The notes under the pieces are model-generated. The model saw nothing but the letters and a program-made list of their open reading frames with translations, searched no databases and was not told where the DNA came from. Shown piece after piece: positions 145 to 47,938 of a stretch of 64,000 nt of DNA (position 1 is its first letter; each line of letters starts with the position of its first letter). The position numbers and the translations under genes are program-made. The DNA is from Vitrella brassicaformis CCMP3155 (lineage: Eukaryota > Protista > Chromerida), in contig CDMY01000748.1 of the NCBI GenBank assembly GCA_001179505.1, positions 186,001 to 250,000 on the forward strand. Reading direction: 5' to 3'.

Positions 145-730
145 CACCTCACGTCCATCGGTCGCCGACAGATACAGCGACGACACCACAGACAATGCAC
201 TCACACACACATCGATGTGTGGGTGGATGTGTGCAGCAGCAAAGGCACACACACCGACACAGATGGCCAATGCGCGCACACTGACACCCTATAGCAACTC
301 GAGCAGGGGCATGCAGCAGAATAAACCGACGCAGCAGCTGGCCACAAATCCAGACATCGCTGCCGGACGGTCTCACCGCCGCAAAGGCACTCACAGCGGA
401 CGCACCAGGGGGCAGTGCTCACAGGATGGCCACCAGCCTATACTCGAGGTAAGCCTCCTTTCCACTGTAGGTCAGTCTGGCCGGCGCGATGACCCGCCGC
501 ACCTCACCCACACGCATGTCAGTGAAGGTCTCCTGGACCCACTCAGCAACAAAGTCAGACACACAACGCACCAGCCCACGGTATCCATATCTCTTGTCTT
601 GGCCGTCGAAGTCGTCAGCCCACGCGACCTCGTCGATCTCGACGTCCTGGTTCTGTGTCGGTTTGGGCCCATTGCCCGGCCGCACCACTTGATGAAACAC
701 ACCCGACGGCGACCGAGTGAACACATCGCC
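145..730 (-). repeat. Segmental duplication partner of about 35012-35600 (FKBP terminal exon plus 3' flank)
   Basis: Shared blocks such as gagatacagcgac, aatgcactcacac..atcgatgtgtg, caactc.agcaggg.catgcag and gcagtgctcacaggatggccaccagcct occur at both loci in the same orientation. Confidence 0.8.
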
Positions 731-1138
731 GCCGCCGCCATGGCCGGCTGCTATGGTTGGTGATGAGACCTCCTGACGCCGCAGTGTGGCGCCATTGCCA
801 TTGGCCACACCCACACTGACACACAGACACACAGGCACACAGACACACAGCCCCAATGAGAGCCCACCGTCTGTGTGTCTGTGCAGCACCTACGTCTCAT
901 TCGGCAGCACTCCCTTTGGCAGCAGCGACTCGCGGCCGCTCCTGTCCTTGCTGTAGAAGTTGACGCTCGTGCGGCAGATGTCCAGCGGCAAATAGATGCG
1001 CTTCTTGGGGCGGTCGGGGACCAATGCGTTGAGCTCGTAGAAGTACTCGCCCGGCTGGGCAGGGTCCTCCAGCACATTGCGACTGAACTCCAGCACACCG
1101 ACGTCCACCAGTCTGTCACTCATTGCGCCTGCACACAC
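419..1138 (-). CDS. FKBP-like domain protein; 3' exons only, 5' end unresolved
   Basis: Terminal exon reads SPSGVFHQVVRPGNGPKP...ADDFDG...EWVQETFTDMRVGEVRRVIAP...YLEYRLVAIL*, an FKBP_C-like pattern. It joins an upstream exon (about 892-1130, DRLVDVGVLEF...PNE) through a phase-2 intron (AC|GTAGGT ... GTCAG|T). Confidence 0.7.
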
Positions 1139-1574
1139 ACACCGACAGTGTAAGAACCAAATGACCTGGCGAGTCTGTCTGTTTCTGCTGCTTGGCTGTG
1201 TCAGTGTTTGCTCTTGTTTGCGTACCTGTGTGCCGCTGGCCGGTCCACGGGCTTGGTTGGTGCTGTGGATGGATGACGTTTGTCAGATGAACGGTGCTGC
1301 CTGCCCAAACACCACACAGACGCACACTGGTGAAGCTGCTGGCTCAGATCTACATATTTGCTTGTCGTCCGAGGCTCTCTGACCCACCTCGCGCTGCAAC
1401 GAACGAACGAACGAACGAACGCTGCAAAAAGCCGATCGGCGAGGGAATGCGAGCTTAGCATGGGAGGAACTCTCCTCTCCCGCGGAGCCCAGAGAGGCCT
1501 GAAGGTTTCCTGTCTTCAGACCTGACAGATCTGTGCCTTTGTCGTACCAACAGGCGACACCAACCACACGAGTG

Positions 1575-2832
1575 ATGCAAAGATTCGCCGCCCTGGTCGT
1601 CGTGATGATGGCCCTCGTCTGCACTGTGACGTCGGACATCAACAGAGAAGGTAGACACTCGTCTGTCCAGCAGCCTGCTTCCACTCAGTGCCTTCACTCT
1701 TACTTGTGTGTGTGCTGCGGTCTCTCTGGCGTGCTGCAGGCGGATCAGCTGAGGCTGCCTACGAGAGAAGTGGTGCCCCTGCCGACGGAAATAGCAGCCT
1801 GCAAGGTGCGCAAGTGTGCACTGCACGATTCTATGTCATGGAGGGGGTGTGTGTGTGGGTGTTTGTCAGAGGGCCCGGGCGGCGTGAGCACTCCCCTTGC
1901 TCCATTGGGGGGTGGCTCGGCCGGTGTGGAGAACAACAGCGGGTCACTTTGCATGCCAGGGACCCCTGGCTGCGGCATGCCCTCGGCTTCCGGTGAGGCG
2001 TCAGCCGGCACCCTTGTCGTTGACGGCAATGCGATTGAGCCTGAGACGGAAGTGACGGCCGATGGCAGCCCACTTGACGAGGCTGGTGCGGCAAATGGCG
2101 GTATGTCACTCACTCCCGTCACGGACGGTCCGACTTGTTGGCGTGCATGATGTGTGTGGTGTGTGCGTGTGTGCCAGGGAGTCGTTTGCGGAGACTTGTG
2201 GAGGCCGGCGGCGACCAGACCACACCGCCGCCCGTGGACGATGCGGGTACGACGCACCGTACTTTCGACGAGAAGGACAGGCGATTATGTGTGTCGGGAT
2301 TTGCCCTTGTCCTTGTCCGTGTGTGGTGTGGTGTGGTGTATGGGCGCCGTTGTAGGGTGGCGGGAGCGCCTAAAAGGATATAAAGAAAAAATTAAAGGCC
2401 CCCTTAACAGAGACGGCAATGCCATTGAGCCTGAAAATGAACTGATGGCGGATGGCAGCCCACTTGAGGACAACGGCGGCGCGGCCACTCATGGTGTGTC
2501 ACTCACTCCCTCGGGTGATGGAGGGTCGAAACTGCTAGGGGTGTTTGATGTGTGTGTGTTGTGTGCGTGTGTGCCAGAGAGTCGTTTGAGGAGACTTTGG
2601 AGGCGGCTATTCCTGGACCTGGAAGATATCCAACATAGCGGTAATTAGGAAGAAGGCAAGCGCGCTCACGAGTCTATGTATCGCCCTTGTCTGTGTATGC
2701 GCGCCATCAGCCGGCCCCCTTGTTAAAGACGGCAATGCGATTGAGCCTGAGACGGAGCTGACGGCTGATGGCAGCCCATTTAACGAAGACAGCTCTGGTG
2801 ACACCAGCGGTCGCATGTGCGGACTCAATTAA
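1575..2832 (+). CDS. Secreted low-complexity protein with three DGNAIEPExExxADGSP repeats
   Basis: Signal-like MQRFAALVVVMMALVCTVTS. Repeat units start at about 2022, 2412 and 2728. Two homologous introns (gt.tgtcactcactccc...gtgtgtgccag) are each followed by an SRLRRL exon start. Confidence 0.55.
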
Positions 2833-4000
2833 GTAGGGCAGCTTCTATACTCCGCGCTGGCTGTAGTTTCGTTACTACTGGGAGGCCGTTGTTTTGGGGT
2901 GAGTGAGGCCAGCTCGTGTGTGTGTTGTGTTAATAGTTGTCTGTCAACCAGACGGACGGCGAGGCACAGACAGGCGGATGGCCCCTGTAGTAGTGTGTGT
3001 GTGTGTGTGTGTGTGAAGATAGTCCATATGTGTCGATAGAGGCCCGTGATGGGGCGGTGTGCACCTGACACGACCGACCGACAGGGAGGTCGACTGCAGG
3101 CAGGTGCACTTTCTTTCGGGCTGAGTGGGGGTGGGGTGCGTGGAACTGCACGCACGTTCATACGGCACTTTTGCTGACAAACACCGAGATGGGTTCAATC
3201 TTCATCTCGTGGTGCCTATCATCCCTTCACACGTGCCCGCCAGCAGGGTGGTCGAACCTGTGCCGGCGAGAGAGAGAAAGGGAAGCCCTTTTCATCTGTC
3301 TGTCTGTCTGTCTGTGTCTCTTGTGTATGGTGTTCACTCTCTTTCCCGCTTATCTCTTCCCGTCTGTGGTGGGTGGCGCGTCTGCCGCTGATTCACTGAG
3401 CCAGGTGCCGCCCGTCACACGGGGGCAACACACACAAATGACACGGGGAGGGAGGGAGGGAGGGAAGCGCTGTCAGCTGGACCAACTGTGTGGAGTTGAT
3501 TCGCTTTGGTTCCGTGCTGTTGTGTGCTTTCGTCAAGTGCCGTTGTCTCCTGAGTGCTCATCGAGTCGCATCTCGTCCCGATGAGCAGTCGGCAGACACC
3601 CGGCGTGTGACGAGAGCATACAGCACATTGGGGAACCGAATCGTCGTATGGATGCAGTGAGGGTGGTGGTGGTGGTGAATGGATGTGACAGGGGGCAAGA
3701 AGGGATGCATTGCGGCCATTCGACTCAATGTGTGAAAAGACTCCCTTCAGAACACACGATGGAGAGTTGCACATCGGAACTCTGACAATTGAGTTCTCAA
3801 GACCACACACAGCAGAAAGATGAGCGTTAATGGGACACATACAGCCAGACGACCGCACTAACCACTTCCCTCTCTCCCTCTCTTCCTCATTCCCTCCCTT
3901 CTGCTTGCGCAAACACAAAAAGCGTGACTTATGCAGGCCGCTGCACTTCGGAAAATCAGCTGGCTCAGGGTGTTTCGTTGGACAACCGCGTGCACCGAAC

Positions 4001-4085: not shown

Positions 4086-4256
4086 CACCGGCGGCACACG
4101 GCTGTGTTCTCATGAATGGGAGTGGAAGCAGCACGACACACACAACGACACGACACACGTGTACTCAGAATGAGTGAGCTATGCACACAGCAGGCCGCCA
4201 ATGTACCCACCACTGAATCTGACTGTACAATCAACACATCTCTGCACGGGCCTCAC

Positions 4257-5407: not shown

Positions 5408-6050
5408 CGCTTCTTTCACCTCTCCTACTCTCCATTGCGAGCCTCTGTGCGATCCGCACCGGGACCGTGCTCGTATCCATTGCTTGTGGCCATTGGAGCG
5501 CTCCCTGGGACGCAACCAAACCTCCTTTGGGCCGTATGCTGGAAAAAATTCATCGCGAACCGTGAAAAGTTCGTCCCCCAAGAGGCATCAGTGTGGCCTG
5601 GTGCTCGCCTTGGGCCTCACTTGAAGACACCATCCCGACGCTATCGAAGACACGTATGCCAGCAAACTGGTCAAAATGGCTATGCGGACGAATGCATGTG
5701 TGTGCGTGTGGATCGAAGCACGGGAGAGGTCGAGGGAGAAGACGGGCGGGCGACACTGTCTATGATGCATGCAGCCAGCATGCAGGCTGGGCCACCCGTG
5801 GGGTGTGAAGATGATAGTGGAGATACACCAGCTTCCGCTTTTGGCCACCGAGAGCCTCGGCGAGAGGGAAGAAAAGTGACCCCCAAACGTACGGATGGCG
5901 AATGGGATGCATACTGTCTTCACCTGGCGTGGGCTTCTGTCTGTGGACTCTGCAAGGCACAGAGAAGTCGGAGAACTGCAACCCCGCGTGGAGGGGGACG
6001 CTCCCCTAACCCCCAACCCCCGGCCTCCCCCCCAGCCTCCCTCCCAGCCC

Positions 6051-6350
6051 NNNNNNNNNNNNNNNNNNNNNNNNNNNNNNNNNNNNNNNNNNNNNNNNNN
6101 NNNNNNNNNNNNNNNNNNNNNNNNNNNNNNNNNNNNNNNNNNNNNNNNNNNNNNNNNNNNNNNNNNNNNNNNNNNNNNNNNNNNNNNNNNNNNNNNNNNN
6201 NNNNNNNNNNNNNNNNNNNNNNNNNNNNNNNNNNNNNNNNNNNNNNNNNNNNNNNNNNNNNNNNNNNNNNNNNNNNNNNNNNNNNNNNNNNNNNNNNNNN
6301 NNNNNNNNNNNNNNNNNNNNNNNNNNNNNNNNNNNNNNNNNNNNNNNNNN
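6051..6350. other. Assembly gap (300 N)
   Basis: N run flanked on both sides by ccccagcctccctcccagccc, consistent with a collapsed tandem repeat. Confidence 0.99.
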
Positions 6351-7259
6351 CCCCAGCCTCCCTCCCAGCCCACAGCATACGGACATAATTGAAAGGTTTT
6401 GGTCCACGTTCATCAATATCTGCGCGATTGCCTCGTCATCGCAAGACCCCGGACGACAGACACAGCCTTTGTTGGCACAAGCAGCTGGAGGAGCCAATGA
6501 TGAATTGATCTGTCAGCCGCGGTTTGGCCATGCGGCAAGGTATGAATCTGTCATTTGTGTCAGAAACAGAGGGAGCCGATGAGAGGTAAGTACACAAGGT
6601 ACGCCTCGATGCAGCCTCGCATTCATTGAATCTGCTTCGTGTGAACGCAGGCGATACCGTCAGTGTGGGCCTTCCCACAATCACGTGTCTTTGTCTTCAG
6701 TGCATGACCGCCTATCACTATGGGCCTCCCCACAGTCGTGTGTACGCAAACCCACTCTGTCTCTTCAGTGTGCGGAGTGTCTGCCATGTGGATGTGTGTT
6801 GTGCATGGAGAGAGAATTGATGTATGTCCCTGACCCACTGCAGAGGCAATGGCTCCCCACCTCTTCTTTACCTAGTCTTAAACCATGCACAAGATCCATC
6901 GCTTTACGCTTCTGCCACGGGTCTTGTCTGCTCGAAACGCTGACAGTCTTTCCTGCGCAGACGCATCTACGCGAATCCGAAGCCAACAAACTCAGCCACT
7001 CAACCACTCAACCACTCATTCTCTGAACACTGCCCTGTACAAACCTTCAGAACATGCAGAAAAGTCCCAGTCCTTTCTTCGGCTGACCTCTCCCGAACTC
7101 ATGGCACGTGTCTCTGGCCGCGATCCACTCGCAAGCTTGCAACTTCCCCCCTGAAGATCTTCCTCTCCTTACGCTCTCTACTCACCCGAGGCAGCAGCGC
7201 AGAGCAGAGACTCGCGCGCTCGTGGTCCACATCAGTGCACGAAGCGAGACGCACCTGAG

Positions 7260-8542
7260 ATGACGCCTCTCGTGCTCGTGGCCCTTTTGCTGGGGATCGG
7301 CTATGCAGGGGGGAGGCACCTCGGCACCCGCCCTGCCATCAGCGGCTTCCAGGCGCTGCAGATGCCCAAGATCACTCACGCCAGTCTCGAGGAGGGCCAG
7401 CTCGTGCGCAGGATGGCAGAGCAGGCTCGGGCCACCGCAACACAGGCAACACGTAAGCCCACACACTGGGGCAAGCCATGAGGGAGGAGGACGTGAGAGA
7501 GGGGGGTCGTGCTGTGGGTGTGTTTGTGGCTCCAGCTCCCACCAGGCCGGCGATTCCGACGATTCCGGCGAGTCGAAAGACCGACAGGGCGATGGGTCTC
7601 TTCGAGGGATGCGCTGTGTACTATGGTATGTATGCTGGGGACAAGGTGCACATCCGATGCACATGGCGTCTGTGTGCTGGTCAGATGCCAACGACTGCTA
7701 CCAGCTCGAGGTGGGCAACAAGCGTCGCCCCATCCCAGCAGCCAACTGGCCCGACATCAAGCGATTTGCCGACGTCAACATAGTGGCGGGCGTGCCGCAA
7801 ATCAGGTGAGGAGGACTGAGTGGATACCAGCCATCAGTCCAAGTGCCGATCAACTCTCTGTCTGTCAATCGTTGGCATGGCAGTGTGGCCGCCGAGATCA
7901 CCTCGCCCGCCAGCAAGGAGGCAGTGGGTCTCTTCGATGGTCAGTCTGTGCACCTCGACCACAAGGGAGGGTATCTGGTGGAGCTCGGTGACGAGTGGCG
8001 GCCCATTCGCGAGGAACACTGGCCTGACGTCAAGATGTTCACCGACGTCGACATCGCCAAGATCCGGCAGGAAATGTACGCGCCCACAAACGCACCTACG
8101 CACTCATTCTCCTGCTCACCACCACAGAGATATCTCTGTCTCGCCGTTTCCTTTCAGTCTGGGTGGTTCTGGCGGGGAGGGTCCCGACCTCACCTTCGTC
8201 CGCGCGCCCTCGTCTGGCATGCTCTTCCAGCTAGTGACTCCAGGGACGGGCGCGTCGCCTTCTCGCGGCGATGCGGTGAAGTTCAACGCCAGGGAGTGGC
8301 GCCGCGGCTTCGCCGGCGAGCCGGGAACCGAACTCGACAACGAGTGGAAGGACGAGAGACTCGAGTCTGATCAGCCGCTCGTCTTCAGTACCAACGAAAA
8401 GGGCGAGAGGCGCGCCATCTCGAGCGACTTTTTCCACGAGATTCTCTGGTCGATGAGAGTGGGGGAGACGAGGCGCGTGATCAGGCTACCGAAGTTCGGG
8501 TACACGGCTTACTACGAGCTCGAGCTGCTCAAGATAGAGTAA
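7260..8542 (+). CDS. Signal peptide + two copies of an unnamed ~45-aa module + FKBP-like domain
   Basis: MTPLVLVALLLGIGYAG leader; modules GLFEGCAVYYG|DANDCYQLEVGNKRRPI..WPDIKRF and VGLFDGQSVHLDHKGGYLVELGDEWRPI..WPDVKMF; terminal exon SSGMLFQLVTPGTGASP...SMRVGETRRVI...YYELELLKIE*. Intron phases are consistent. Confidence 0.75.
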
Positions 8543-8698
8543 CTGCACTGACTCACTCAACCACTCACTCACTCAACCATCCAACCACATGCATATCACC
8601 ACCAACACCAACTGAGCTGCTCTTGCCTGCCATGCCCATATGTCTCCCTGTGTGCCTGCCTGCCTGTCTGGCTGATGTGACCTCAATTGCACGGATGC

Positions 8699-8998
8699 NN
8701 NNNNNNNNNNNNNNNNNNNNNNNNNNNNNNNNNNNNNNNNNNNNNNNNNNNNNNNNNNNNNNNNNNNNNNNNNNNNNNNNNNNNNNNNNNNNNNNNNNNN
8801 NNNNNNNNNNNNNNNNNNNNNNNNNNNNNNNNNNNNNNNNNNNNNNNNNNNNNNNNNNNNNNNNNNNNNNNNNNNNNNNNNNNNNNNNNNNNNNNNNNNN
8901 NNNNNNNNNNNNNNNNNNNNNNNNNNNNNNNNNNNNNNNNNNNNNNNNNNNNNNNNNNNNNNNNNNNNNNNNNNNNNNNNNNNNNNNNNNNNNNNNNN
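8699..8998. other. Assembly gap (300 N)
   Basis: N run. It probably hides the equivalent of 10421-10887, including the ATG of the next gene. Confidence 0.99.
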
Positions 8999-10169
8999 CG
9001 GCTTTGACGCTGGATCTGGTGTTGACGATGGTGTCTTCGGCGGCGATGGGTCATGCAGGGGGTCTTACGCTCCCTTGCACCAGCTTCCAGGTGCTTCAGA
9101 TGCCCAAGATCACTCACACGAGCCACAAGCAGCTGCTGGGATCAAGGAAGAGACCATCTCGTAAGCACAGCTTGAGGATGATGGAGGGAAGCGCAGAGGA
9201 TGCCCACATGAGGAGTGGAGTGCGCCCGTGTGTCCGTGTGTTGGTGCAGGTGCGGCTCTCGCGATGGCCGGGACGGACAGGGCGATTGGCCTCTTGCATG
9301 GCCACCCGGTGTACTTCGACAGTGCGGACGGCTATCAGGTTGATGTGGACGGCAGGCGCCGGCCGGTTCCGAGCTGGCTGCACATCCGCAGAGTCGGCGA
9401 CGTGCAGGTCGAAGGGGCTGCTGGTCTGCCGCAAATCAGGTACTAGAGGCATTGACCCTTTCCAGGGATGCTTCACCCGCTGTGCATCTGTTGTCTGTCT
9501 GTGGTCATTCTGGCTGCATGCGTCAGTGCGAGCACCCAGGTGGTTTATCCAGCGAGCGATGAAGCTGTGGGTCTCTTCCAGGGCCGCCCCGCCCACGTCG
9601 ATGAGAAGGGAGGCTTCCTTGTCAGTGTCGATGGCGAGTGGCGGCCCGTTAGGAAAGACGACTGGCCAGACGTCATCAGATTCACCGATGTGGACGTCAC
9701 CACGCTCGAAGAACGGTGCGCACGCAGAGATGAGGCAACAACACGCTTTTTCTGCCGTTTCACTGCCTTAGTCGCTACTTGTGTTGGTCGCATCAGGCTG
9801 GACTGTACGATTGGGAGACTCCAAGACGACAGAACATTCATTCGGCTTGGGCGGTTCCTCTATCAGGTGGTGAGACGCGGCACAGGTGTCTGCCCGGCCA
9901 CGGGCGACACTGTAAGGTACAGAAGGACGCTTTTTGACTACGGATTTCCACCCGACAGAGGCAGCAAGAAGCTGAGAGATTATGAAGCGACCCTCGAGTA
10001 TGGCAAAGCGTCCCTGTACGGCTTCGAGCATGATATGCTGTGGTCCTTCGAGCACGATATGCTGTGGTCGATGAGGGTTGGCGAAGTCCGGCGCGTCATC
10101 AGACCAATGAGTGGCTCGAACAAGACTTATTGGGAGCTGGAGCTGATCGAAATAATAGAGCAGAAGTGA
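8999..10169 (+). CDS. Paralog 2: leader + two modules + FKBP-like domain (start lies in gap)
   Basis: Same exon layout as 7260-8542 and near-identical to 10884 onward. FKBP exon FLYQVVRRGTGVCP...SMRVGEVRRVI...YWELELIEIIEQK*. Confidence 0.7.
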
Positions 10170-10883
10170 GCGAGGCATTGTGCTGTGCTGGGCTGGGCTG
10201 GGCTGTGCTGGGGGCTGGGCTTGGCTTACTACAGCTCGAGCTGCTCAAGATAGAGTAACTGCACTGACTCACTCAACCACTCACTCAGTCGACCATCCAA
10301 CCACATGCATATCACCACTACCACTAACACCAACTGAGCTGCTCTTCCCTCACATGCCCATATGTCTGCCTATGTGCCTGCCTGCCTGTCTGGCTGATGT
10401 GACCCCAATTGCACGGATGCGTGTGTGACTGACTGACGAGAGGAGTGCTTTTTGATGGCATTTTAGCCCTGGTACTGGTCTGATTGGCTGTGTGTCAGAC
10501 AGTGAGTTTTCGCCTGTCAGCATGAGACGAATTCGTGACGTGACTTTGCTGCTGCATATGGGGGGCAGAGAGAAGGGCAAGAGAGAGACCGCTTGCTTCT
10601 TTGACGAGAGGAGGGAGGGAGGGACAACCCAATCGACTGTGTGGGATTCCCTTCACCGTCTGTGTGTACTGGTGCATCTGTTACTTTGGTGTGTGTCAGT
10701 TTCCATCACAAAACAGATCGACTCGACCAACTGCAATCCACAAGTGATGAAGCGACGAATGCATCATTGTCACTTCTGGCGCCCTTCTCCTTCTACAATC
10801 TGCCTGCGAGCTTCGCACAATGCCAGGCACAACACTCCTGGCTCTGAAGGGCTAGTGGCAAGGAATCCAAGGCTGGATCAGAC

Positions 10884-12133
10884 ATGACGGCTTTGACGCT
10901 GGATCTGGTGTTGACGATGGTGTCTTCGGCGGCGATGGGTCATGCAGGGGGTCTTACGCTCCCTTGCACCGGCTTCCAGATGCTTCAGATGCCCAAGATC
11001 ACTCACACGAGCCACAAGCAGCTGCTGGGATCAAGGAAGAGACCATCTCGTAAGCACAGCTTGAGGATGATGGAGGGAAGCGCAGAGGATGCCTACGTGA
11101 GGAGTGGAGTGCTGCGCCTGTGTGTCCGTGTGTTGGTGCAGGTGTGGCTCCCGCGATGGCCGGGACGGACAGGGCGATTGGCCTCTTGCATGGCCTTTCG
11201 GTGTACTTCGACAGAGTGGACGGCTACCAGGTTGATGTGGAGGATGGTCGACGGCGGCCTGTTTCGAGCTGGCAGCACATCCGCAGACTCGGCGACGTGC
11301 AGGCCAAAGGGGCCGCTGGTCTGCCGCAAGTCAGGTACTGAAGAGGTGCACGGACACATGGATTGGTTGATTTTTTGTCCCCCAACGCGTCGCAGTGTCG
11401 TGTGTGTCCGTCTTTTGTGGGTGCATGCGTCAGTGCGGGCACCAAGATCATCTATCCAGCAAGCGATGAAGCTGTGGGTCTCTTCCAGGGCCGCCCCGCC
11501 CACGTCGATGAGAAGGGAGGCTTCATTGTCAATGTCGATGGCGAGTGGCGGCCCGTCAGGAAAGACGATTGGCCAGACGTCCATCAGGTTCACCGACTTG
11601 GACATGACCAACATACGCGGAGAGCTGTAAGTACACAGACATGAGGCAACAACTCTTCTTTTTTTTTTCTCCATCTATACTCGTTCCTTGCATGTGTCGT
11701 TGGTCGCATCAGGCCGGGCAGTGCGAAAGCCATATTCCAAGGCGACAGCACATTCATTCGGCGTGGGCGGTTTCTCTACCAGGTGGTGAGACGCGGCACA
11801 GGTGTCTGCCCGACCACTGGCGACACTGTCAAGTACAAAATGGCGGAATTTGTTGACGGATTCCGAGGCGACAGAGGCAGCAGATTGTACGTCAAATTCG
11901 AATCGAGCTTCGAGGATGGCGACCAGTCCTCGGGAGGCTTCGAGCGTGACATGCTGTGGTCGATGAGGGTTGGCGAAGTGCGGCACGTCATCGATTCAAT
12001 GAGTAGTGGCTCGGACACGACTTATTTCGAGCTGGAGCTGATCGAAATAATGGAGCAAGGTTTAGTAATATCACACTCTGACAGACTGAGCTGTTGTGCT
12101 GTGCTGTGCTGTGCTGCGAGTGAGTTTTGCTGA
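10884..12133 (+). pseudogene. Paralog 3 with a +1 frameshift in the second module (or a sequencing error)
   Basis: gacgtCCatcagg at 11576-11588 versus gacgtCatcaga in paralog 2. The downstream FKBP exon (QVVRRGTGVCP...SMRVGEVRHVI...YFELELIEI) is intact. Confidence 0.6.
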
Positions 12134-29168: not shown

Positions 29169-32100
29169 ATGGTCGTGTGGCTGTTTGCCGTCCTCCTGGT
29201 GCCCTGGGCGGCTGTCGATGGGTTTGTGCGGCCACCACTCACACCGCTGCAGCCGCAGATGCAGCCCACATCACGGCTGGATGGCTTCCACCGCATCAGC
29301 CGACTCAGAGGACGTCAGCCAACACCGACACACATACAGATCTCACGCTGCAGTGAACGTCACTCTGACTGTGTGTGTGTGTGTGTGTCTGTGTGTGTGT
29401 CTGTGTCTGTGTCTGTGTCTGTGTCTGTGTCTGTGTATCTGTGTAGGGCGGTGTGTTGCCGCCATGAGTGGAGAACCGGTTGGGCTGTTGGATGGTCAGT
29501 TCGTCCATGGGGATGGCAAAGGCGGTTATGAGTTGGTGGTCAATGGTCAGCGGTTGGCCATCAAGCCGTCGTTCCACTCGCACATCAAGTTCTGCATCGA
29601 ACCCGACAAGTGAGCGACCTGAAGACCCAGACACAGACAGGTGTGCTTCCACCCTCGACTTGGTGCTGGTGGTCAGGTCATCTGTCGGCACCGATAAAGG
29701 CCAAGAGAATAAGGAAGGCGATCAGCTACCAGCACCCGCACCAACCCCAGCAGCGAGACCAGCGGCAGATGAAGGGACGGCGGACAGCAAAGACAACGAC
29801 ACGACTGACGATGGCTTCGTCCAGCACCTTTCTGGCGCACTTCACAAGGTGGTGCGGCAGGGCAGTGGCAGAGTGCCGACGGCCAACGACACCGTCAAGT
29901 TCGACGAGATTGGGTGGTTTGATGACTTTCACGGCCAGGAGAAAGCCTTCGATGACCGTGGGTTCGAGTGGCGTGTGTCTGATCTGGCTGACTGGTGGCG
30001 TGAGGCGATACTGTCGATGCGCGAGGGGGAGGTGAGGCAGATCATACGGCCAGCCAGATATTCTGTCCGCTACCTTCAGCTGCGGTTGATCGGCATTATA
30101 AACGACGCGTGAGTAACACTGTCACACAGGCACATTTGCTTTCATCCCGACTTGGTGCTGGTGGTCAGGTCGGCTGTCGGCACCGATAAAGGCCAAGAGA
30201 ATAAGGAAGGCGATCAGCCACCACCACCCTCACCGACCCCAGCAGCGGGACCAGCAGCAGATGAAGGGGCGGCGGACAGCAGCGACAACACGGCCGACGA
30301 TGGCTCCGTCCAGCGCCCGTCTGGTGCACCTCACAAGGTGGTTCAGCAGGACAGCGGCAGAGTGCCCACAGCCGACCAGGCCGTCAGTGTGGGTGTGACC
30401 AATGGCAATGACGCCACACTGCGGCGTCAGGAGGTCTCATCGCCAACCACAGCAAGTGGCCAGGGCGGCGGCGATGTGTTTGCTCAGTCGTCGTTGGGTG
30501 TGTTTTATCAAGTGGTGCGGCAGGGCAGTGGACCCAAACCGACACGTAAGCAACGAGTCAAGATCGACTACATCGAGTGGACTGATGACTTCGACGGACA
30601 AGACAAGAGATGGGACAGGCGTGGGTGGGAGTACCCTGTGTATGCTGAGCGTAATGAGTGCATCCATGAGGCCCTCACTGACATGCGTGTGGGTGAGGTG
30701 CGGCGTATTGTGGTGCCGGCCGGGCTCAGCATCACTGGGAAGGAAGGCTTCGTCGAGATGCGGCTATTGGACATCTGGTGAGTCGAGCTCATCCACACAC
30801 GTGTGACGATTGGTGTGCGCCACGTCATTCACTTCGTGTGTGAGTGGTGCTCCTCCTCTCCCCTTCAATGTTCCCTTTGCCAGGACTCCTGTGGGCTTCA
30901 GACAGATGCCGTCTGGCGTCTACTTTCAGGTGGTGCAGCCGGGCAGTGGGCCAAAACCGACAGGTGACCAACGCGTCAAGTATGACTTCATCCAATGGGC
31001 TGACGACTTCGATGGAGATCCAGTACACGAGAAGCGTGGGGAGGTGGATTGCCCGTCCGACTGTGATGAGTGGGAGGAGGAGATGTGGACTGACATGCGT
31101 GTGGGTGAGGTGCGGCGTATTGTGACGCCGGCCGGGCTGATCAACAAATGGACGGAGGATTTCATCGAGTTGCGGCTTTTGGACATCCTGTGAGTCGGGG
31201 TACATTCACACATGTGTGAGGATTGGTGTGCGTCATGGCATTCACTTCGTGTGTGTGTGGGTGTTGCTCTTCCAGTCCTCTTCGGTATTTCTTTGCCAGG
31301 ACTCCTATTGGCCCCGAGCGGCCACCATCACCACCAGCAGCAGCAGCTACGACGGCGTCTAATAACGACAGCAGCCATGAAGGATTCACTCTGTATCCCT
31401 CTGGAACCTATCATCAAGTGGTCAAAGAGGGCAGTGGGCCCAAACCGACGCATGACCAGTGGGTCAAGTACGACGTCATCGGGTGGCACGACGACTTCGA
31501 CTTGCAAGAGAAGGAATTTGAGGAAGGTCGGTGGGAGTTGCGTGTGTCTGAGTGCACTGAGTGGGTCCAGGAGGTCGTCACTGACATGCGTGTGGGCGAG
31601 GTGCGTCGGGTCGTCGTGCCGGCCAGACTGAGTGTCACTGGCAAGGAGAGATATATCGAGTACAGGCTGGTGGACATCATGTGAGTCGGTACACATTCAC
31701 ACACGTGTGCGGACGTTGATGTGACTCGCGGCATTCACTTCGACTGTGCGTGGTGCTCTTTGCTTTTTTGCCAGGAATTCTGTCGGCCCCGACTGGCGAC
31801 CACCACCACCAGCAGCAGCTCCGACGGCACCTAAGAATGACAGTAGCCATGAAGGGGCGGCGGACAGCAAGGGCGACGACACGACTGACGATGGCTTCGT
31901 CCAGCGCCCGTCTGGCGCACTTCATAAGGTGGTGCGACAGGGTAGTGGCAGAGTGCCCACACTCCACGAGCGCGTCAGGTATGACGAGATTGGGTGGCGT
32001 GATGGATTCGACGGCCAGGAGAAAGCCTTCGATGACCGTGGGTTGGAGTGGCGTGTGTCTGGTGGGCCGATGAGTGAGTGAGGCGATACTCTCGATGCGC

Positions 32101-34063
32101 GAGGGCGAACTTAGGCGCCTCATTACGCGAGATGGGAAGTACATCGAGCTGCGGCTGATCGGCATTATCGACGAGGAGTGAGAAACATCCACAAAAGGCA
32201 CGGCATTCACTTCGTGTGTGGGTATTTCTTTCTCTCCTCTTTGGTATTTTCTTTACCAGCACTCCCGTCGGCTTCACAAAGATGCCTTCTGGCGCCTACT
32301 GTCGAGTGGTGCAGCCGGGCAGTGGGCCAAAACCGACAGGTGACCAACGCGTCAAGTATGACTTCATCCAATGGGCTGACGACTTCGATGGAGACAAAGT
32401 ATGGGAGAGGCGAGGGGAGGTGGATCGTCCGTCCGACTGTGATGGGTGGGAGGAGGAGATGTGGACTGACATGTGTGTGGGTGAGGTGCGGCGGGTCATC
32501 CTGTCGGGCTCATTGAGCACCACTGGGGAGGATGCTTACATCGAGATGCGGCTATTGGACATCCGGTGAGTCGGGGCACGTCCACACACGTGTGAGGATT
32601 TGTGTGCGTCACGGCTTCACTTGGTGTGTGTGGGTGTTGCTCCTCCTGTCCTATCCGGCATTTCTTTGCCAGGACTCCTGTCGGCCCCGAGCGGCCACTA
32701 CCACCACCAGCAGCAGCAGCTACGACGGCGCCTAATAATGACAGCAGCCATGAAGGATTCACTCTGTACCCCTCTGGAACCTATCATCAAGTCGTACAGC
32801 AGGGTAGTGGGCCCAAAGCGACGCGTGAGCAGAATGTCACGGTCGACATCATCGAGTGGCGTGATGACTTCGACGGACCAGACAAGAGATATGATCTCCA
32901 TGGGGTGGTAGGTCTTGTGTCTTCCTGGGCTGAGTGGGAGCAGGAGATCCTCACTGACATGCGTGTGGGTGAGGTGCGCCGCGTCCTCGTGCCGGGCAGA
33001 CAGGAGGAGAGATACCTCGAGTACAGGCTGGTGGACATCCGATGAGTCGGGCACATTCACACACGTGTGAGGATTGATGTGCGCCACGGGACTCATTCAT
33101 ATCTGCGCATTGCTCTTTGGTATTTTCTTGTCAGGAATTCTGTCGGTTCCGAGCGGCCACCACAACCACCACCGCCACCGTCAGCAGCAGCAGCACCGCC
33201 ACCACTAGCAAGAGAAGAAGCGGCGGCCAGCGATGGCAGCAGGAGGCGGTCGACGGGCGTGTTGTCTCGGGTGGTGCAGCAGGGCAGCGGTCCCACACCG
33301 ACCCGTGACCAGCACATAAAAGCCGACATTATCGAGTGGGCTGACGATTTTGACGGCCAGGACAAGAGAGGGGAGGGCAGTGGGCTGGAGTTTGGTCTGT
33401 CTGATGTACGTGAGTGGCTCCAAGAGATGTGGACTGACATGCGGGTGGGTGAGGTGCGGCGGGTCACCCTGCCGGCCGAGATGAGCACTACTGGCAAGGA
33501 TGCTTACGTCGAGATGCGGCTACTGGACATCACGTGAGTCGGGTTACATTCACACACGTGTGAGGATTGACGTGCGTCATGGCATTCACTTCGTGTGTGC
33601 GTGGTGCTCTTTGGTGTTGTCTTTGCCAGGACTCCTGTGGGCTTCGGCCGACCACCACCACCAGCAGCAGCACCTACGACGGCGCCCAATGATGACAGCA
33701 GCTATGAAGGATTCACTCTGTACCCCTCTGGAACCTATCATCAAGTGGTCAAGGAGGGCAGTGGGCCCAAACCGACGCATGAGCAGTGGGTCAAGTACGA
33801 CAGCATCGAGTGGCGTGATGACTTCGACGGACGAGACAAGATAGGCGAGACGCGTGGGGGGGTTTATCGTGTGTCTAGGTGTCTGGTTTTAGAGTGGTTC
33901 AACGAGATCATAACCGACATGCGTGTGGGTGAGGTGAGGCGGGTTTTTTGTCCCGGCGGAGGGGGGACAGGACACGTGCTTCGAAGAGTACAGGCTGCTG
34001 GCGATTTGTGATAGTGAGATTGAGTGTGAGAATGAAGGCATTGATCTTAGTGAATGTGCCTGA
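29169..34063 (+). CDS. Signal peptide + unnamed module + nine tandem FKBP-like exon cassettes (three carry lesions)
   Basis: Exons 29169-29313, 29447-29609, 29677-30108, 30169-30777, 30884-31189, 31300-31680, 31775-32177, 32260-32565, 32673-33041, 33135-33533 and 33630-~34011/34063. All cassette junctions are phase 2. Confidence 0.75.
29677..34011 (+). repeat. Tandem exon-intron repeat array with higher-order structure
   Basis: Cassettes 1 and 5 share TTDDGFVQ..SGALHKVVRQGSGRVPT; 3 and 6 share VVQPGSGPKPTGDQRVKYDFIQWADDFDGD; 4, 7 and 9 share GFTLYPSGTYHQVV. Most introns share gtgagtcgg..cacacgtgtg..ggcattcacttcg. Confidence 0.92.
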
Positions 34064-35282: not shown

Positions 35283-36912
35283 TCACAGGATGGCCACCAG
35301 CCTGTACTCGATGTAAGCCTCCTTGCCAGTGACACTCAGTCTGGCTGGCAGGATGATCCGCCGCACCTCACCCACACGCATGTCAGTGAACACCTCCTGG
35401 GCCCACTCAGGTTGATCAGACACACGAGCCACCAGCCCACGCTCCTCCCCTCTCTTGCCTGGGCCGTCGAAGTCGTCACGCCACTCGATGACGTCGATCT
35501 TGACGCGCTGGTCACGTGTCGCTTTGGGTCCACTGACCGGCCGCACCACCTGATAGCGAATCCCCGATTGCATCTCAGTGAACACAGCGCCGCCGCCCCG
35601 GCCATGCGGAGAGCTGAGGAGAGGAAGAGAGAGAGCCAATCATGACCTGTACGATCACTCTTCTCATGGGCATCTCACCTTTGCGTGTCGACGCCGTACA
35701 TGGCGGCCGTCTTGTTGAAGGTCTCCTGTCTGGGCGCACTGTCCATTACGAGCGGCATTCGCACCCCGCCCATTAGCTTTGTGTCGGGCAGTGAGGCCGC
35801 GTGTCGTTTGCGGCGGTAGTGGTCCACCAGACGGCGGACGTGGTCGACGGGCACATCCTCAATGGGAGCCGGCCACCTGATGGGGGACAACACACCACAT
35901 CACGCATACATCCAGCCAGCCTGGTGCTGGTGTGTACTCTGTTGATGCTCACAGGTTGAATCTGTTGGTGAGAGCAATGTCGCCCATCACATCGAGGGTC
36001 GACTGAGTCGTCGAAACGGTCTGGCCACACACGTCGACAGACCGAATGGCATCGCCGCCACTCAAAGGCGCCAGGAAGGGCTTCACGGCCTGATAGACAG
36101 ACATACAGACGCAGCCATGGACAACCTTCAGTGCTTTGATTGACTGTGTCTCTCTCACCGTAATTTCCATCATCGTCTGGTCGTATGCGGCCTTCTTGGC
36201 CGCCCGCTCGCTGTCGAGGTCGTTCTTCTTTGCCACGAAAGTCTTGACGAAGCTCTCCACCTCCGCCACGACCCCTCTCAGTTCTGCCGGCAGCCCGTGC
36301 GATGCCACCGTCGGCTCTTCCGAGTGACCCTGTGCAGCCGAAGATGCGTCGGTGGATGGCTTGTCGATGGGCGAGAGGAGCACTGCTGTCCAGAAGTCAT
36401 GAAGGCCTGCACACAACCCACACACACACACACACACACACACGTCCACACACATGCAGGTGGACAAGAGGAGAAGGTTTGCATGCGCCCTAATTACCTT
36501 GGTAGTTTCTCGTCTTTGCCTCGTCCATCAGCCGGTCCACCGCACCCTGCCCGTCCAGGATGGCCTCCAGCATCGCGTCAAACGCACGCGGACACACATC
36601 GACGAACACGCGATTGTCTGCATCACGACCCAGCCGCCCATCCCATCTGCCACCGAACAGCACCGCCAGCAGTGTGCCCTCGACGCTCGTCAGGTGCTTG
36701 CGGCGCACAGACGAGTGGCTCCCGCCGACATTGACCTTAAGCAGGTCGTCGCCAGAGGCCGCCGATGGGTCTAAGGCGCCGTGGTCACTCAGCAGTTTGC
36801 CGATGTCATAAGAGGAGGCCATGTCAGCCCGCTCGGCCTCGAGGCGCTCCATCGGGCCGACTATCTGCCTGTCCAGCCGGCAGAGGGCCTCGTGGCGAGT
36901 GAAGGGCTCCAT
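35283..36912 (-). CDS. KCTD-type BTB - coil - degenerate BTB - FKBP-like protein (copy 1)
   Basis: LKVNVGG..VRRKHLTSVEGTLLAVLFGGRWDGRLGRDADNRVFVDVCP; RSVDVCGQTVSTTQSTL...HVRRLVDHYRRKR; terminal FKBP exon QSGIRYQVV...DMRVGEVRRII...YIEYRLVAIL*. Five exons. Confidence 0.8.
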
Positions 36913-37267
36913 GACAGCAGACCGACGAACGCTGAGACACAGAGCAGCAGACAGACAGACAAACGGCAGATGCACTCATCAGATCTTCTTGATCATAGCC
37001 TCTGTGTGTCACTCCTGAGCTCTCCTCTTACCTCATTTGGCTGTTCCCTCTCCTACTCCTACTTGAAGCTCGCACGCCGCTGAAACCGCTCTCTCGCTGT
37101 GTGTGATTCGCGGTGCTCCCTGAAACCGCTCGCCTGTGTGTGATTCGGAAGGCATCGCTGCACGTCAGGGGGTCGAGAGCGTCACCCAGGTGAGGCAGGA
37201 GAGAGATAGCAATCAATTACAAGCCAGATCTGTCATGCTTGTGTGGTTGACAGGCACATCAGTTACG

Positions 37268-38911
37268 ATGGATGCCGATTTCAGCGTCCCTGTGATGCAG
37301 CTTCAGCTGCAGGGGCCATTGATGGCCATCAGCGACGCCATCAGCCAGCTGCATGCCCAAATCCGCCAGGCTGACGAGGACGCCCAGCAAGAGAGGCAGA
37401 AGCACGGCGCATCGGACCCATCAGCAGCGTCGCCCGATGACGTGCTGATTCTCAATATCGGCGGCGATGACAGATGGCGGGTGAAGCGGCAGCACATGAC
37501 TCAAGGGGAGGGCGTGGAGGGCACTCTGCTGGCGACGCTGTTCTCGGGCTGCTGGGACGGCCGGCTGAGCAAAGACGACAAGCAGCGGGTGTTCATCGAT
37601 ATGTCCCCCTCAGCGTTTGAGACCATCCACACGGCCATATTGGACGCCGAGACGATGCGCAGCGCGGGTAAGGCGGCGTCGGTTGCCACGCTGCTCGAGG
37701 AGACATCCCAGCGGGACTGCACCGGTAAGGGCCATGAAGGCGGCAACACACTCATCCTGTCTTCTCACTTATCGTTTGGCTGCCGTGGTGTAGGTCCCCA
37801 TGGCTTCTGGATCAAGCTGCTGCTGTCGCCACTGGACAAGGCGGCCTCAGAGGCCACTTCCAGCGGCGTCACTGAGCCGCAGCCGGCCGCCACCAACAGC
37901 CCCGCTGCGAGTGACGACGCCGTCAAGCCTCTGCAGGCGAGGGTCGAGGCCATCATGAAGGCTTTCGCCAAGGAGAAGGCCCGGCTGGAGGCGCAGCTGA
38001 GGGCGGCCAACAAGCGACGCGACAATCTCGACAAGGAGATACAGGTGATGAGATGCGCCCAGAGGGAGAGGAGGGTTGTTGGTCTGATGCTGTGTGTGGT
38101 TCACAGGCCGTGAGTCCCTTCCTGCTGCCTCTGAGTGGCGACGATGACCCCATCAGGTCTGTCGACGTCTGCGGCCACGTCATAACGACCACTCAGTCGA
38201 CTGTCGATGAGATGAGTGACGAGCTGCGGAACAGATTCGACAGGTGAGCATCGACCCACCGAAGCCCTCACTGACAGCGATGCACACTCGAAGATGGCTG
38301 TGTGTATCCTCTCTGTGTGTCTTAGGTGGCCGCGGCCGGTTGAGGTGGTGCAGCCCGACCACATCGGCCGCATGGTCGATTACTACCGCCGCAAGCGACT
38401 CGGTGCGTCTGCCGCCGACATGGCTGCAGTGCTGAAGATGGACAAGCCCACCAAGCAGAGCGCCTTCGACATCAACGCGGCCATGTACGGCGTTGTCAAC
38501 ACAGACACACCCACCACACACGGCGCGCAGCAGACCAGGTACGCAGATGGAGAGCTGCGCAGGAAGGCTGACCTCGCCGTCTATCTCTCTGTCTTGTTCC
38601 CTTTGTGCAGTGGCGATGGCTTCATTGAGATGCCGTCTGGTAATCGGTATCGCATCGTCACGGAGGGCACCGGGGGGGTCCCCACAGCCAACGACCGCAT
38701 CAAGTACGACTACATTGCGTGGCGTGATGGATTCGACGGCCGGGAAAAAAGCATCGATAGCCGTGGGCGGGTGGGTCGTGTGTCTGATGCGGCTGAGTGG
38801 TGGCGTGAGGCGATGCTATCGATGCGGGAGGGGGAGACGAGGCAGACCATACGGCCAGCCAAATATCATTATGGCCGCTACGTTGAGCTGCGTTTGATCA
38901 GCATCGAGTAG
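37268..38911 (+). CDS. BTB - coil - degenerate BTB - FKBP-like protein (copy 2)
   Basis: LILNIGG...TLLATLFSGCWDGRLSKDDKQRVFIDMSP; RSVDVCGHVITTTQST...RMVDYYRRKR; PSGNRYRIVTEGTGGVP...SMREGETRQTI...YVELRLISIE*. Intron positions match copy 1. Confidence 0.8.
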
Positions 38912-39228: not shown

Positions 39229-39264
<36 letters not shown>

Positions 39265-44645: not shown

Positions 44646-46244
44646 TTGCTACACACCTACCGGTGAGAGTGGAATTGGCGTGACAGACAGAAAGAGCAGG
44701 TGTGGGCAGTGACCTGATCGGCTTCTGCGTGTGTGTGTGTGTTTGTCTTTAGGTAGCCGTAGATATTGACAGCCAGCTCCTCGGCTGATGGTTGGAGTGT
44801 TGGTGGCTGTGGGCGGGGCGGAGGGACACACAGCCGATGGGATCTAGCCGTTAATCGATGGACGGAGACTAGTGGATGGATGGACGAGTGTGTATGACTG
44901 ACGGCCGGAAACGAGATGAGTCCGTGTGCATGTGTGTGTCATTCTTGTGAATCCATGTCTATGTGTGTCGGGTCCGTCACTCAGCTGCTGGCCACCTGCA
45001 TACACGTCATCATCTCAGGCCAGGCCGATGTCAGAAGTGTCGGTTTCATCTAGGTGCCACACTTCAACCATCGAAAACAACGCGTGTGCACATACTGCCC
45101 CCCCTGTGGTCCCGTCAGACAGAGCAGGATTGAATGCCGACAAAGACATCCACGTGCAGGATTGAATGTCACACACGCGAACGGCCGGCAGACATTCACT
45201 GCACGTCAGCTACTGCGACCTAATGTAACCGTACCAACACAAGCAAGTACATAATGCTCTGTGACTGCCTATGTGGCTCTCCGCCCCTCAATGCAAAGAG
45301 GCACATGAAGACAGACAGTCGTCACCCACGGGAATCCAGTGCACGTCGAGCGACTGTACACGTCTATGCGTTAGTTGACGATATCTCAATGCATGCACAG
45401 GCGGCTGCGCAACAATTCAGCAAGAGACCAGTAACGTACCTACGTACGCCGATGGATGGACCAAACAGAGTGCAGAGCGTGCCGACTGCCTTCTCCCCCC
45501 CTCCCCTTCCCGTCGACTTTGCGGGTGCGTCCATGTGTTGTGGTCGATGAGAAGGCCGCCCGGCCCTCTCATGCGCCCAACCGCTGTAACTTCCCAGCCG
45601 ACACATGAATAGACAGACAGACCAGACTGACAAGACAGAGAAAAAAAACCCGTGCACCGTCTGAGACACCCCCATGCCCCCACGATTTTTTGGAGGCCCC
45701 CAGGGCTGTGAGAGTGTAAAAAGTTGGTGATGTTCAAGAACCGCTCAGAGTGCTGTGTAGGTGTGGATGCGTATTCCGGTAGATCACTCGTTGGCCAATG
45801 GAGAGTATCAGCTATAACGACAAATTTGACACAATGAAGGAAGAGCTCGAGGTCACAGCATCTGTGTGACACATGTATATATCATACACGGCCTCAAATC
45901 ATTCCGCGTCGCATCACAAAGCACACAAGTGGACTTGGGACAGCAGCACCGGCAGCAGCGTACACAGACAGGAAATTATGTACGGCTGCACGACAAAAGA
46001 TACATGACTCGGCTTGATACATGGATGCCACGTGGATGTGTGGCAGAGAGGATCCCCACCCTCACAGGCACCCAGGCACCCAGGCAGGCCACAAAAAGCA
46101 GCAGCAACATCCTACCTACCAGCCTCTCATTGCTGGCTGCATACATCGGTCAGCTGACATAGCTACGGAGAGAAAAAGCCTACCGGTGCCCACCACCCGC
46201 CGACCACCCTCTCTCTCTACAGTCTGTCTGGGCTCTGCCCATGC

Positions 46245-47938
46245 CTACTTGATGATTTTGAGCAGCCTGAGCTCTACGTATCCCGTCTTCTTGGATATCT
46301 TGCGGACCTCTGGGGGAACGATTAGGCGTCGCGTCTCGCCCACCTTCATGCTCGTCAAGGCCTCACGCGACCACCGCCCCAGCGTCGACACCTTCTTCTC
46401 CCACCCCCTGCAGACACAACACAAAACACGCACAAGACACAGCAATGCAGGCAAGCAGGCAGGTACGTATGACACAGGCTGGTTGGGTGTGGGTGGCTGC
46501 GTACTGGTAGTGGAATGCTTTTGTCTCGCTGTCGAATGAGTCTGCCCACTCGATGTAGTCGTACTGGATGTGGCTGTCGAGCTGCGGCTTGGGGCCGGTG
46601 CCCGCCGTCACGATCTCGTAGCGCACTCCCAGCGGGCTCTCCTCATACTTGACGCTATCCATGTGACACACACACACAGAGGGGAAAGATTCGACCATTT
46701 CTTCAATGGGTCTTTTCTTCGGGCGGCTGGCGTACCTGAGATCGACACCGTACATGGCGGCGGTTTTGTTGAAGAAGTCCTGCTTGGGGCCGTTGCCCAT
46801 CTTGAGCGGCACAGCCACGCAGCCCTGCAGACACTCGTCAGTGACGGCGGCGGCGTGTCGTTTGCGGCGGTGGTAGTCGACCAGTCGACGGATGTGCTCC
46901 TCCGACACGTCCTCAACGGCAGCGGGCCACCTGCAGACACACACAGCGACCAAAGGGGAAACGTCTGTTCCCCGCCCGCCTCGTGTGTGGTGTGTGTGGT
47001 GGTCACTTACAGTTGGAATCTACTTGCCAGTGCGACGTTGCCCATCTCAGTGAGTGTGGAGTCGGCCGTCATGATGACCTTGCCACACACCTCCACCGAG
47101 CGAATGGGATCGTCGCCACTGACGGGCTTCAGGAAGGCACTCACAGCCTAAAGAGCACACAGACACACAGACACACACTGACAAGGATCCTTCGCCCTGA
47201 TCCCTGCCCCTCTCTGCCCACCGTGACTTCCTTGATGAGGCCGTCGTACTGGTGCTTCTGTTGCTGCACCTCCTCGTCCACTTTGGCCTTCTCCGCCATG
47301 TAGCCCTTGAGGAACGACTCGACGGTCTTGCAGAACCCCCGCAGCTCATCCACGCCGCCGGCCGACACCGAGGGCGCCTCGTCGGTGCGGATGCGCTTGC
47401 GGGAGGGCTTCTCGATGGGCGACAGCAGCCGACGCACCCAGAAGTCATGAAGACCTGCACACACACAAAGAGGCAGAGGCACAGGCCGTCCACACACACC
47501 CATTGCCCTCTCGTTGCCGTGAGCACCTCTGTAGTTGCGGTTGGCCATCTCGGTCATGAGCAGGTCGACGGCCGCCTTGCCGCCCTCAAACAGCGTGTTG
47601 CGCACCTTCTCGAACGCCTCGGACTCCATGTCGATGAAAATGCGATTGTCTGCGTCGCGAATGAGCCGCCCGTCCCACCGGCCAGAGAACAGGGCCGCCA
47701 GCACAGTGCCCTTAATGCTGGTCAGGTGCTTGCGGCGGACACACGACTGACTCCCGCCGACATTCAGCAGCAGCAGGTCGTCGCCAGAGGCCGCCGATCC
47801 GTCAGATGCGCCATGCTGGGCCATCGCTTTGGTGATGTCGTAGGCGTTGTCCTTGCGCCGCTCATCAAGGGATTCGAGCAGCGCCACGACGTGGCGGTCG
47901 AGCTGCGACGTCGCATTGACGCGAGTGAGCGGCTCCAT
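46245..47938 (-). CDS. BTB - coil - degenerate BTB - FKBP-like protein (copy 3; extra intron inside the FKBP domain)
   Basis: LLLNVGG..VRRKHLTSIKGTVLAALFSGRWDGRLIRDADNRIFIDM; RRLVDYHRRKR; SPLGVRYEIVTAGTGPKP...YDYIEWADSFD...|GWEKK...SMKVGETRRLIVPP...YVELRLLKIIK*. Confidence 0.8.

Follow-up and report, generated by a model that had tools for sequence, protein, structure and literature searches.

The DNA analyzed here is a 64,000-nucleotide stretch of the Vitrella brassicaformis CCMP3155 genome (G000:C748:186001-250000, called the window below), to which annotated proteins of CCMP3155 map at 100% identity, and which carries a set of genes encoding FKBP-like domains behind several kinds of N-terminal head. 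A hidden Markov model (HMM) built from the copies and run against the six-frame translation recovered 16 FKBP-like domains and one N-terminal remnant; genes in the window were searched exon by exon, and the full-length proteins referred to are those retrieved in searches. On the forward strand, the matches lie at 8207-8536, 9834-10157, 11750-12052, and 38606-38905, with nine more in an array at 29804-33987 and the remnant at 30293-30400; on the reverse strand, they lie at 425-733, 35289-35591, and 46251-46647, the last in two frames. The first-pass annotation of this DNA had listed 16 such domains, and their number and places were both recovered. All but one of them (15 of 16) are contained within one exon that holds at most a short linker besides, the remaining domain being divided by an additional internal intron.

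The first of these genes (419..1123, reverse strand), read from the sequence and an HMM match, has a third, unnamed type of head encoded by the exon at 1123-894. A phase-2 intron (893-816) leads to the terminal FKBP-like exon at 815-422, and the stop codon (421-419) lies within the sequence CT|GTGAG. This head matched neither a Pfam family nor the beta module described below, and its joint with the cassette was also found in the paralogous MMETSP transcript P0014. Three small genes stand in tandem on the forward strand. The gene at 7260..8542, placed by exact mapping of P0003, has a signal-peptide-like start, two beta modules detected by HMM, and a terminal FKBP-like exon (8158-8539) entered by a phase-2 intron (8076-8157). 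In its paralogue at 9001..10169, to which residues 57-305 of MMETSP P0001 map exactly and whose start is lost in an assembly gap, the FKBP-like exon (9797-10166) is entered by the phase-2 intron 9716-9796, and in the third copy, placed at 10884..12133 by mapping of P0004, the exon at 11713-12130 is entered by the phase-2 intron 11627-11712. The second beta-module exon of this third gene appears to be frame-shifted near 11585, the module HMM match at 11459-11584 being off the annotated frame, and MMETSP transcript P0005 enters its FKBP exon out of frame; the gene may be a pseudogene or may contain a base-calling error.

The array gene (29169..34011, forward strand), to which P0006 and P0007 map exactly, consists of a signal-peptide-like exon, a beta-module exon (29447-29609), and nine cassettes: 29677-30108, 30169-30777, 30884-31189, 31276-31680, 31775-32177, 32260-32565, 32673-33042, 33135-33533, and 33630-34008. 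The introns between cassettes are in phase 2 throughout and the internal cassettes are all 2-2. The remnant at 30293-30400 lies in cassette 2; at about 30383-30400 the N-terminal third to half of a cassette is fused in frame with the beginning of an exon of another type, namely the linker exon belonging to the gene at 815, and a fossil acceptor (..gtcag|TGTGGG..) is retained there. The remnant is the footprint of a DNA-level join inside the array. Cassette 5 (31884-32177) has two bases fewer than its relatives between a conserved GTGTCT and GAGGCGATAC, leading to a frame break and a stop at about 32079; the same letters are present in DNA contigs and in a spliced RNA contig, and the annotation divides the array at this cassette into two proteins, CEM32327 and CEM32328. 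The end of cassette 7 (33037-33045) reads CGA TGA GTC, the donor G having changed to A, such that the usual splice site is gone and translation would end there; in the annotated model a donor farther upstream (33021) is used, at the cost of the last strand. The terminal cassette of a sister array on contig C364 has the same G-to-A change. Hydrophobic, signal-peptide-like starts are present at 7260-7340, 10884-10970, and 29169-29240, followed by Gly-Phe, a basic hydroxyl-rich region, and then a Met that corresponds to the start codon of leaderless paralogues. These starts of the small and array genes may represent a secretory or plastid-targeting leader.

In the remaining three genes the FKBP-like domain is preceded by a T1-type BTB head, a coil, and a second block, in that order. 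The first (35283..36933, reverse strand), established by exact mapping of P0156, has introns in phases 1, 0, 2, and 2, a BTB_2 match of 24.6 bits (cut-off 21.4), and a terminal FKBP-like exon at 35613-35286 that follows the phase-2 intron 35678-35614 and again has its stop in CT|GTGAG. The second (37268..38911, forward strand) was read from the sequence, with HMM matches of the head in four exons; its terminal FKBP-like exon (38611-38908) is entered by the phase-2 intron 38539-38610, and the head is homologous to the other BTB heads, with a BTB_2 match of 14.6 bits that is sub-threshold. These two genes are arranged head to head, their start codons only about 330 bases apart; the two heads share 40% identity, and the cassettes fall into separate clades of the domain tree. 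The third (46245..47938, reverse strand; BTB_2 26.9 bits) was read from the sequence and HMM matches. Its domain, entered by the phase-2 intron 46735-46655, is encoded by two exons (46654-46505 and 46407-46248), and the extra intron between them (46504-46408) is also in phase 2.

The beta module is about 50 residues long, bears the signature VGLLDG...GGY, and occurs in four window genes, with two copies in each of the three small genes and one in the array gene. Its predicted fold is confident and has four strands and a short helix; a Pfam search gave no match and a PDB search no significant one (best E 0.9, to SH3-, FeoA-, or Tudor-like structures). Elsewhere in the genome the cassette is found behind RING-finger heads (P0047 and P0026, the latter unmapped to DNA), and the joint in P0047 is in phase 2. 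BTB, RING, and beta module are mutually non-homologous, and cassettes behind different heads begin with the same non-domain linker at the exon start. Two further candidate partners are doubtful. SET was rejected as a direct partner of the cassette, since a complete BTB head follows the SET part of P0019, which is probably a fused model. The HMG-box tail of P0061, probably also the product of a fused model, is without counterpart downstream of the window paralogue, the linking stretch appearing non-coding.

The FKBP likeness claimed in the first-pass annotation was upheld by a profile match to solved FKBPs and by an AlphaFold2 model. Nine of 15 single copies matched Pfam FKBP_C below threshold (12.5-17.8 bits; cut-off 21.1), none passed the PF00254 gathering cut-off, and the remainder gave no FKBP_C match; the only other Pfam family matched by single copies was one weak YmiA-like hit. 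For multi-cassette proteins, PF00254 is among the precomputed labels. A profile of 14 copies matched solved FKBP/Mip isomerases with an E value of 4e-6 over profile positions 6-89 of 103. The AlphaFold2 model (predicted local distance difference test score, pLDDT, 93.6) has five strands and one helix, and shows the antiparallel sheet wrapped round a short helix that characterizes the FKBP fold; nearly all of the top 50 structures returned by Foldseek were FKBP or Mip (template modelling score, TM, 0.69-0.80, with 0.79 for the match to MIP/FKBP structures; about 20% identity). The cassette domains are thus homologous to FKBPs, divergent in sequence, and of FKBP fold. The classical pocket, which we take to comprise Tyr26, Phe36, Asp37, Phe46, Val55, Ile56, Trp59, and Tyr82 in FKBP12 numbering, is mostly lost: when the profile is aligned to chain 4dz3_A, the Phe-Asp pair alone is kept, a Trp is one position off, and the remaining equivalents rank among the most variable columns of the domain. 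The segment following the last conserved motif (MRVGE) is short. As read from this alignment, the isomerase pocket is probably dead, and isomerase activity or binding of FK506 or rapamycin appears unlikely.

Canonical FKBP-type peptidylprolyl isomerases (PF00254), including the inactive FK domains of multi-domain FKBPs, thus share their fold and a detectable homology with the cassettes, and tandem FK domains occur in known FKBPs as well as in Vitrella arrays. The Vitrella cassettes differ from them, however, in scoring below the Pfam cut-off, in keeping only the Phe-Asp pair, in the short loop past the last conserved motif, in their much higher copy number, and in their partner domains. P0151 (JmjC/cupin plus FKBP), P0152, and P0138 were rejected as family members, having canonical FKBP_C matches of 90-113 bits, and were used as outgroup.

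The first-pass annotation had further claimed that the FKBP-like exon is entered by a phase-2 intron whatever precedes it, and this was the case for all 16 exons of the window; the four joints it had quoted (AC|..AG|T, AT|..AG|T, CG|..AG|G, and AG|..AG|C) were all found there. To derive phase, annotated and transcript proteins were mapped exactly onto the DNA, and only GT/GC-AG introns from which the protein could be rebuilt were accepted. Joints of the genes at 7260, 9001, and 10884, eight joints of the array, and that of the BTB gene at 36933 were established in this way. At 815, 32260, 38611, and 46654 the joint was taken directly from the sequence, HMM matches on either side setting the frames, and the array joint at 29677 was read there as well. 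Elsewhere in the genome, 39 of 41 entering introns were in phase 2 across 29 mapped gene models on six contigs (mapped models lie on C748, C1000, C364, C485, C225, C373, and C544). Both exceptions belong to poor models, one of which continues past an intron end that serves as the usual acceptor in its paralogues. The remaining introns of the mapped genes fall in phases 0, 1, and 2 in 11, 18, and 21 cases, respectively (21 of 50 in phase 2; Fisher's test, 3e-8), figures to be read with the proviso that the copies share descent, so the phase counts are not independent events.

Spliced contigs from run X6 have removed introns 31190-31275, 31681-31774, 32567-32672, and 33534-33629 as modelled. One of these contigs contains cassettes 3, 4, and 5 spliced in series, and another joins the third-type head exon to its cassette (..GAGAC to TGTGGG..), while MMETSP transcript P0001 confirms intron 9716-9796. 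Six phase-2 joints are thereby upheld by RNA contigs and one transcript; RNA junctions were the check that the first-pass annotation had proposed for its phase claim, and the joints in RNA are in phase 2. Runs X1-X3 retain the introns and must therefore be DNA; these independent read sets also contain the array. In the RNA contigs no GT-AG joint was seen to bypass a cassette, the long apparent skips being located in repeated Pro/Ala linkers and lacking GT-AG ends. Combinatorial or mutually exclusive splicing of the array thus finds no support in these contigs; with three consecutive cassettes in one contig and no skipping joint, the cassettes appear to be included together. Mutually exclusive arrays of the Dscam type likewise consist of tandem similar exons with conserved introns, but the Vitrella cassettes do not appear to be chosen singly, three being joined in one RNA contig.

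A structural property of the cassette allows it to be either stacked or terminal. A G directly precedes the first stop past the domain in 56 of 71 exons, giving the letters XY|GTGAG, GTAAG, or GTAGG (binomial 3e-11 at p0 = 0.4); the DNA counted comprised the window, alternate 10-kb pieces of C1000, and parts of C364, C485, C225, and C373. Internal cassettes splice at this latent donor, and terminal cassettes read one more codon and then stop. Since the exon starts after a phase-2 acceptor and its stop lies within a phase-2 donor, it is compatible with itself and with any phase-2 donor, and this self-compatibility explains the arrays and the ease of grafting. Such a cassette can close any frame that offers a phase-2 donor, and copies of it can equally follow one another head to tail, as the nine-cassette array shows. 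Beta-module exons (29447-29609 and 7884-8075) also use phase-2 donors, one of them being 2-2; the entire gene family, and not the FKBP-like cassette alone, seems to share phase 2 as its usual joint.

The histories of domains and heads were compared using a tree of 109 domains with canonical FKBPs as its root. Solely for tree building, the exon halves of the 46251 domain and of the broken cassette at 31884 were set in one row with an X at the break. The BTB label changes 15 times on the domain tree, with at least five changes forced by well-supported branches. A single BTB clade was present in no bootstrap tree of the 109 domains and was rejected by the approximately unbiased (AU) test (delta lnL 208, p 6e-98), and BTB, RING, and module heads occur together within one well-supported clade of C1000 copies. 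For 20 BTB genes, the head tree and the domain tree reject each other (p 1e-65 and 6e-4). Individual pairs illustrate the conflict: P0162 is 85% identical to window gene 37268 in its head and only 48% in its domain, and that domain is 62-66% identical to those of genes whose heads are 43-46% identical. Synonymous distances are discordant in both directions, being 0.084 for the head and 0.467 for the domain of P0155/P0161, and 0.352 for the head and 0.073 for the domain of P0156/P0164. As the discord is about five-fold either way, fast protein evolution cannot explain the tree conflict. A comparison of domain tree and N-terminus tree had been suggested in the first-pass annotation; the two are incongruent and do not match whole-gene duplication. 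The shuffling of the FKBP-like exon among unrelated heads is therefore supported by the unrelated heads themselves and by the discordant trees and synonymous distances. The shared phase, from which the first-pass annotation had argued, does not carry the case, as phase alone would follow from common descent too.

In P0162, the one case dissected, breakpoints were not found in the flanking introns; the similarity at DNA level shifts first a few codons into the exon and a second time at the stop. This exchange has the look of gene conversion among resident copies, and not of classical intronic recombination or a move to a new gene. Much of the swapping looks like conversion of this kind. It is possible, though less likely, that concerted evolution accounts for most of the pattern, each head type having received its cassette once, long ago, with later conversion scrambling the domain tree and few true shuffles. 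The P0162 tract would fit such a history, as would the P0156/P0164 domains, which at a synonymous distance of 0.073 are far younger than their heads (0.352), and the tendency of domain clades to follow genomic clusters, as in the C1000 clade. However, at least three independent joinings to non-homologous heads are still required, and the remnant at 30293-30400, a half cassette fused to another exon type with its fossil acceptor, is left unexplained. Conversion is, moreover, itself a form of exon-level mobility, so that it refines the shuffling of the exon among heads and does not replace it.

At least 150 genomic matches to the cassette were found, clustered on few contigs, and about 140 of 150 are without a stop. 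In a search of 1.84 billion representative proteins, true members exceeded about 53 bits per domain when re-scanned with the family HMM. Canonical FKBPs scored below 50 bits in the re-scan, save for five close canonical relatives at 58-69 bits that Pfam and the tree put outside the family. All 34 members with a named source are from Vitrella, and the first-pass description of the family as lineage-specific holds as far as the collections reach. P0097 was rejected as a Vitrella member, its gene not being encoded in the CCMP3155 genome. The literature searched contained no description of this cassette family.

Selection was estimated from 27 independent exon pairs, with 11 pocket-equivalent columns fixed beforehand. 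The ratio of nonsynonymous to synonymous substitution rates (dN/dS) of the domain is 0.89 overall, above the roughly 0.3-0.5 of the heads, and a value so near 1 may partly reflect relaxed constraint, the Nei-Gojobori method (NG86) being in any case crude on mosaic sequences. At the pocket-equivalent columns dN/dS is 1.39 (bootstrap 1.03-1.91, the lower bound being near 1), compared with 0.83 elsewhere. Core columns are invariant across the pairs and neighboring columns change in more than half of them; alternate positions on two strands and a short loop change in about half. Such a pattern would fit a variable binding face. The first-pass annotation had proposed that the family builds variable binding proteins on the FKBP fold; the degenerate pocket and the fast-evolving positions of the pocket face speak for that proposal as regards variability, and it is from these that we infer binding.

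It is unlikely that most copies are drifting leftovers of a past burst whose variability is neutral. The overall dN/dS of 0.89 would be in keeping with decay, as would the frame shift in cassette 5, the missing donor G of cassette 7, and the shifted module exon of the 10884 gene, but about 140 of the 150 genomic matches remain free of stops, many members are present as transcripts, and core columns never change while their neighbors change in over half of the pairs. Very improbable is plain whole-gene duplication, with phase inherited, domains evolving rapidly, and the tree conflict no more than noise. The genes at 7260-12133 are clearly whole-gene copies in tandem, with domains that group in a single well-supported clade, the clusters are dense and tandem, and the alignment is short; nevertheless, BTB, RING, and beta module are not homologous, AU tests reject congruence, and synonymous distances of heads and domains disagree about five-fold in both directions. 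Least credible of all is that chimeric models or collapsed repeats have produced false head-cassette combinations, for although P0019 (SET plus BTB) and P0061 (HMG tail) resemble fused models, the P0015 model reads through an intron end, MMETSP P0001 and P0005 are chimeras of two near-identical paralogues, and the window has three gaps, its heads and cassettes are separated by only 65-82 bases of intron with good GT-AG sites in uninterrupted sequence, the joints are upheld by RNA contigs and transcripts, no gap falls at any cassette, and the array is present in DNA runs of three studies.

We therefore regard it as probable that these genes belong to a Vitrella-specific family of exon cassettes, each encoding a degenerate FKBP-fold domain of about 100 residues, usually with a short linker in front. 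The cassettes would have spread by tandem duplication of genes, tandem duplication of exons, and exon-level exchange between clustered genes, the last by gene conversion or ectopic recombination, and a new head may at first have been linked to a neighbor's cassette by splicing from a phase-2 donor upstream of it. The domain appears to keep the core of the fold and to have lost most residues of the isomerase pocket, with one face of the sheet and the pocket-equivalent positions changing at or above the neutral rate; for these reasons its most likely role is that of a variable module for target recognition, which in BTB and RING proteins would bring targets to ubiquitin ligases. A more speculative synthesis, which we put forward tentatively, is that a large and rapidly diversifying recognition repertoire has been built on the former FKBP ligand pocket and wired to BTB/RING ligase scaffolds and to secreted or organelle-targeted carriers, by means of a self-compatible phase-2 cassette whose stop doubles as a donor, providing a protist counterpart of TRIM and BTB-MATH surveillance families that would owe its origin to exon shuffling outside animals.

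Several points weigh against this account. Besides the shared descent that underlies the phase counts, the P0162 breakpoints inside the exon, and the crude dN/dS estimates, the domain alignment is only about 105 columns long, and resolution is lacking at many forks of the tree; about half of the DNA of the main cluster was covered; some architectures are automatic gene models, of which P0015 and P0046 look wrong; transcripts P0001 and P0005 are chimeric, as noted; and the apparent SET and HMG partners probably reflect fusion of annotations or extension of BTB genes.

In animal extracellular proteins, exon shuffling of symmetric modules follows Patthy's phase-compatibility rule and involves phase 1-1 exons. 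There, as in the Vitrella cassette, one exon corresponds to one folded module, both borders share a phase so that the module can be inserted or stacked in frame, and the partners are unrelated. Vitrella differs in the phase (2-2, or 2 then stop), in the photosynthetic alveolate host, and in the FKBP fold, and its cassette is normally the last exon, with a stop in a latent donor, and is exchanged in a partly conversion-like manner. To our knowledge, phase-compatible exon shuffling is textbook matter in animals (phase 1-1) and poorly documented in protists. The Vitrella locus provides a large and clear case of exon shuffling in a non-animal host (at least 150 exons), in which recent copies and many intermediates are still visible, with a different phase class and a simple structural reason for mobility, namely the cassette's own stop within a latent donor.

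Expanded families of ubiquitin-ligase (E3) adaptors include the BTB-MATH and F-box proteins of nematodes and plants, the RING-B30.2 TRIM proteins, and the KCTD proteins with their T1-type BTB. In common with Vitrella, they place a BTB or RING scaffold N-terminal to a more variable C-terminal domain, occur in tandem clusters, and show dN/dS above 1 at the presumed binding face, the Vitrella estimate being crude. In Vitrella, by contrast, the recognition domain would be of FKBP fold, the ligase function is putative, and the cassette is also carried by heads without a ligase link and by signal-peptide-bearing proteins. An enzyme fold looks to have been turned into a variable recognition domain on ubiquitin-ligase scaffolds, which bears on how single-celled eukaryotes diversify their recognition proteins, and the "peptidylprolyl isomerase" labels that databases attach to cassette proteins are probably wrong as to function.

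The three assembly gaps of the window touch none of the FKBP-like exons or their 5' introns. The gap at 6051-6350 is intergenic, and its flanks (6030-6371) overlap by 21 bases of C-rich repeat, such that it may represent an unmerged overlap and not missing sequence. That at 8699-8998 lies between two genes, after the stop of the gene ending at 8542, and has cost the 9001 gene its first two codons; that at 19900-20199 falls within an unrelated gene.

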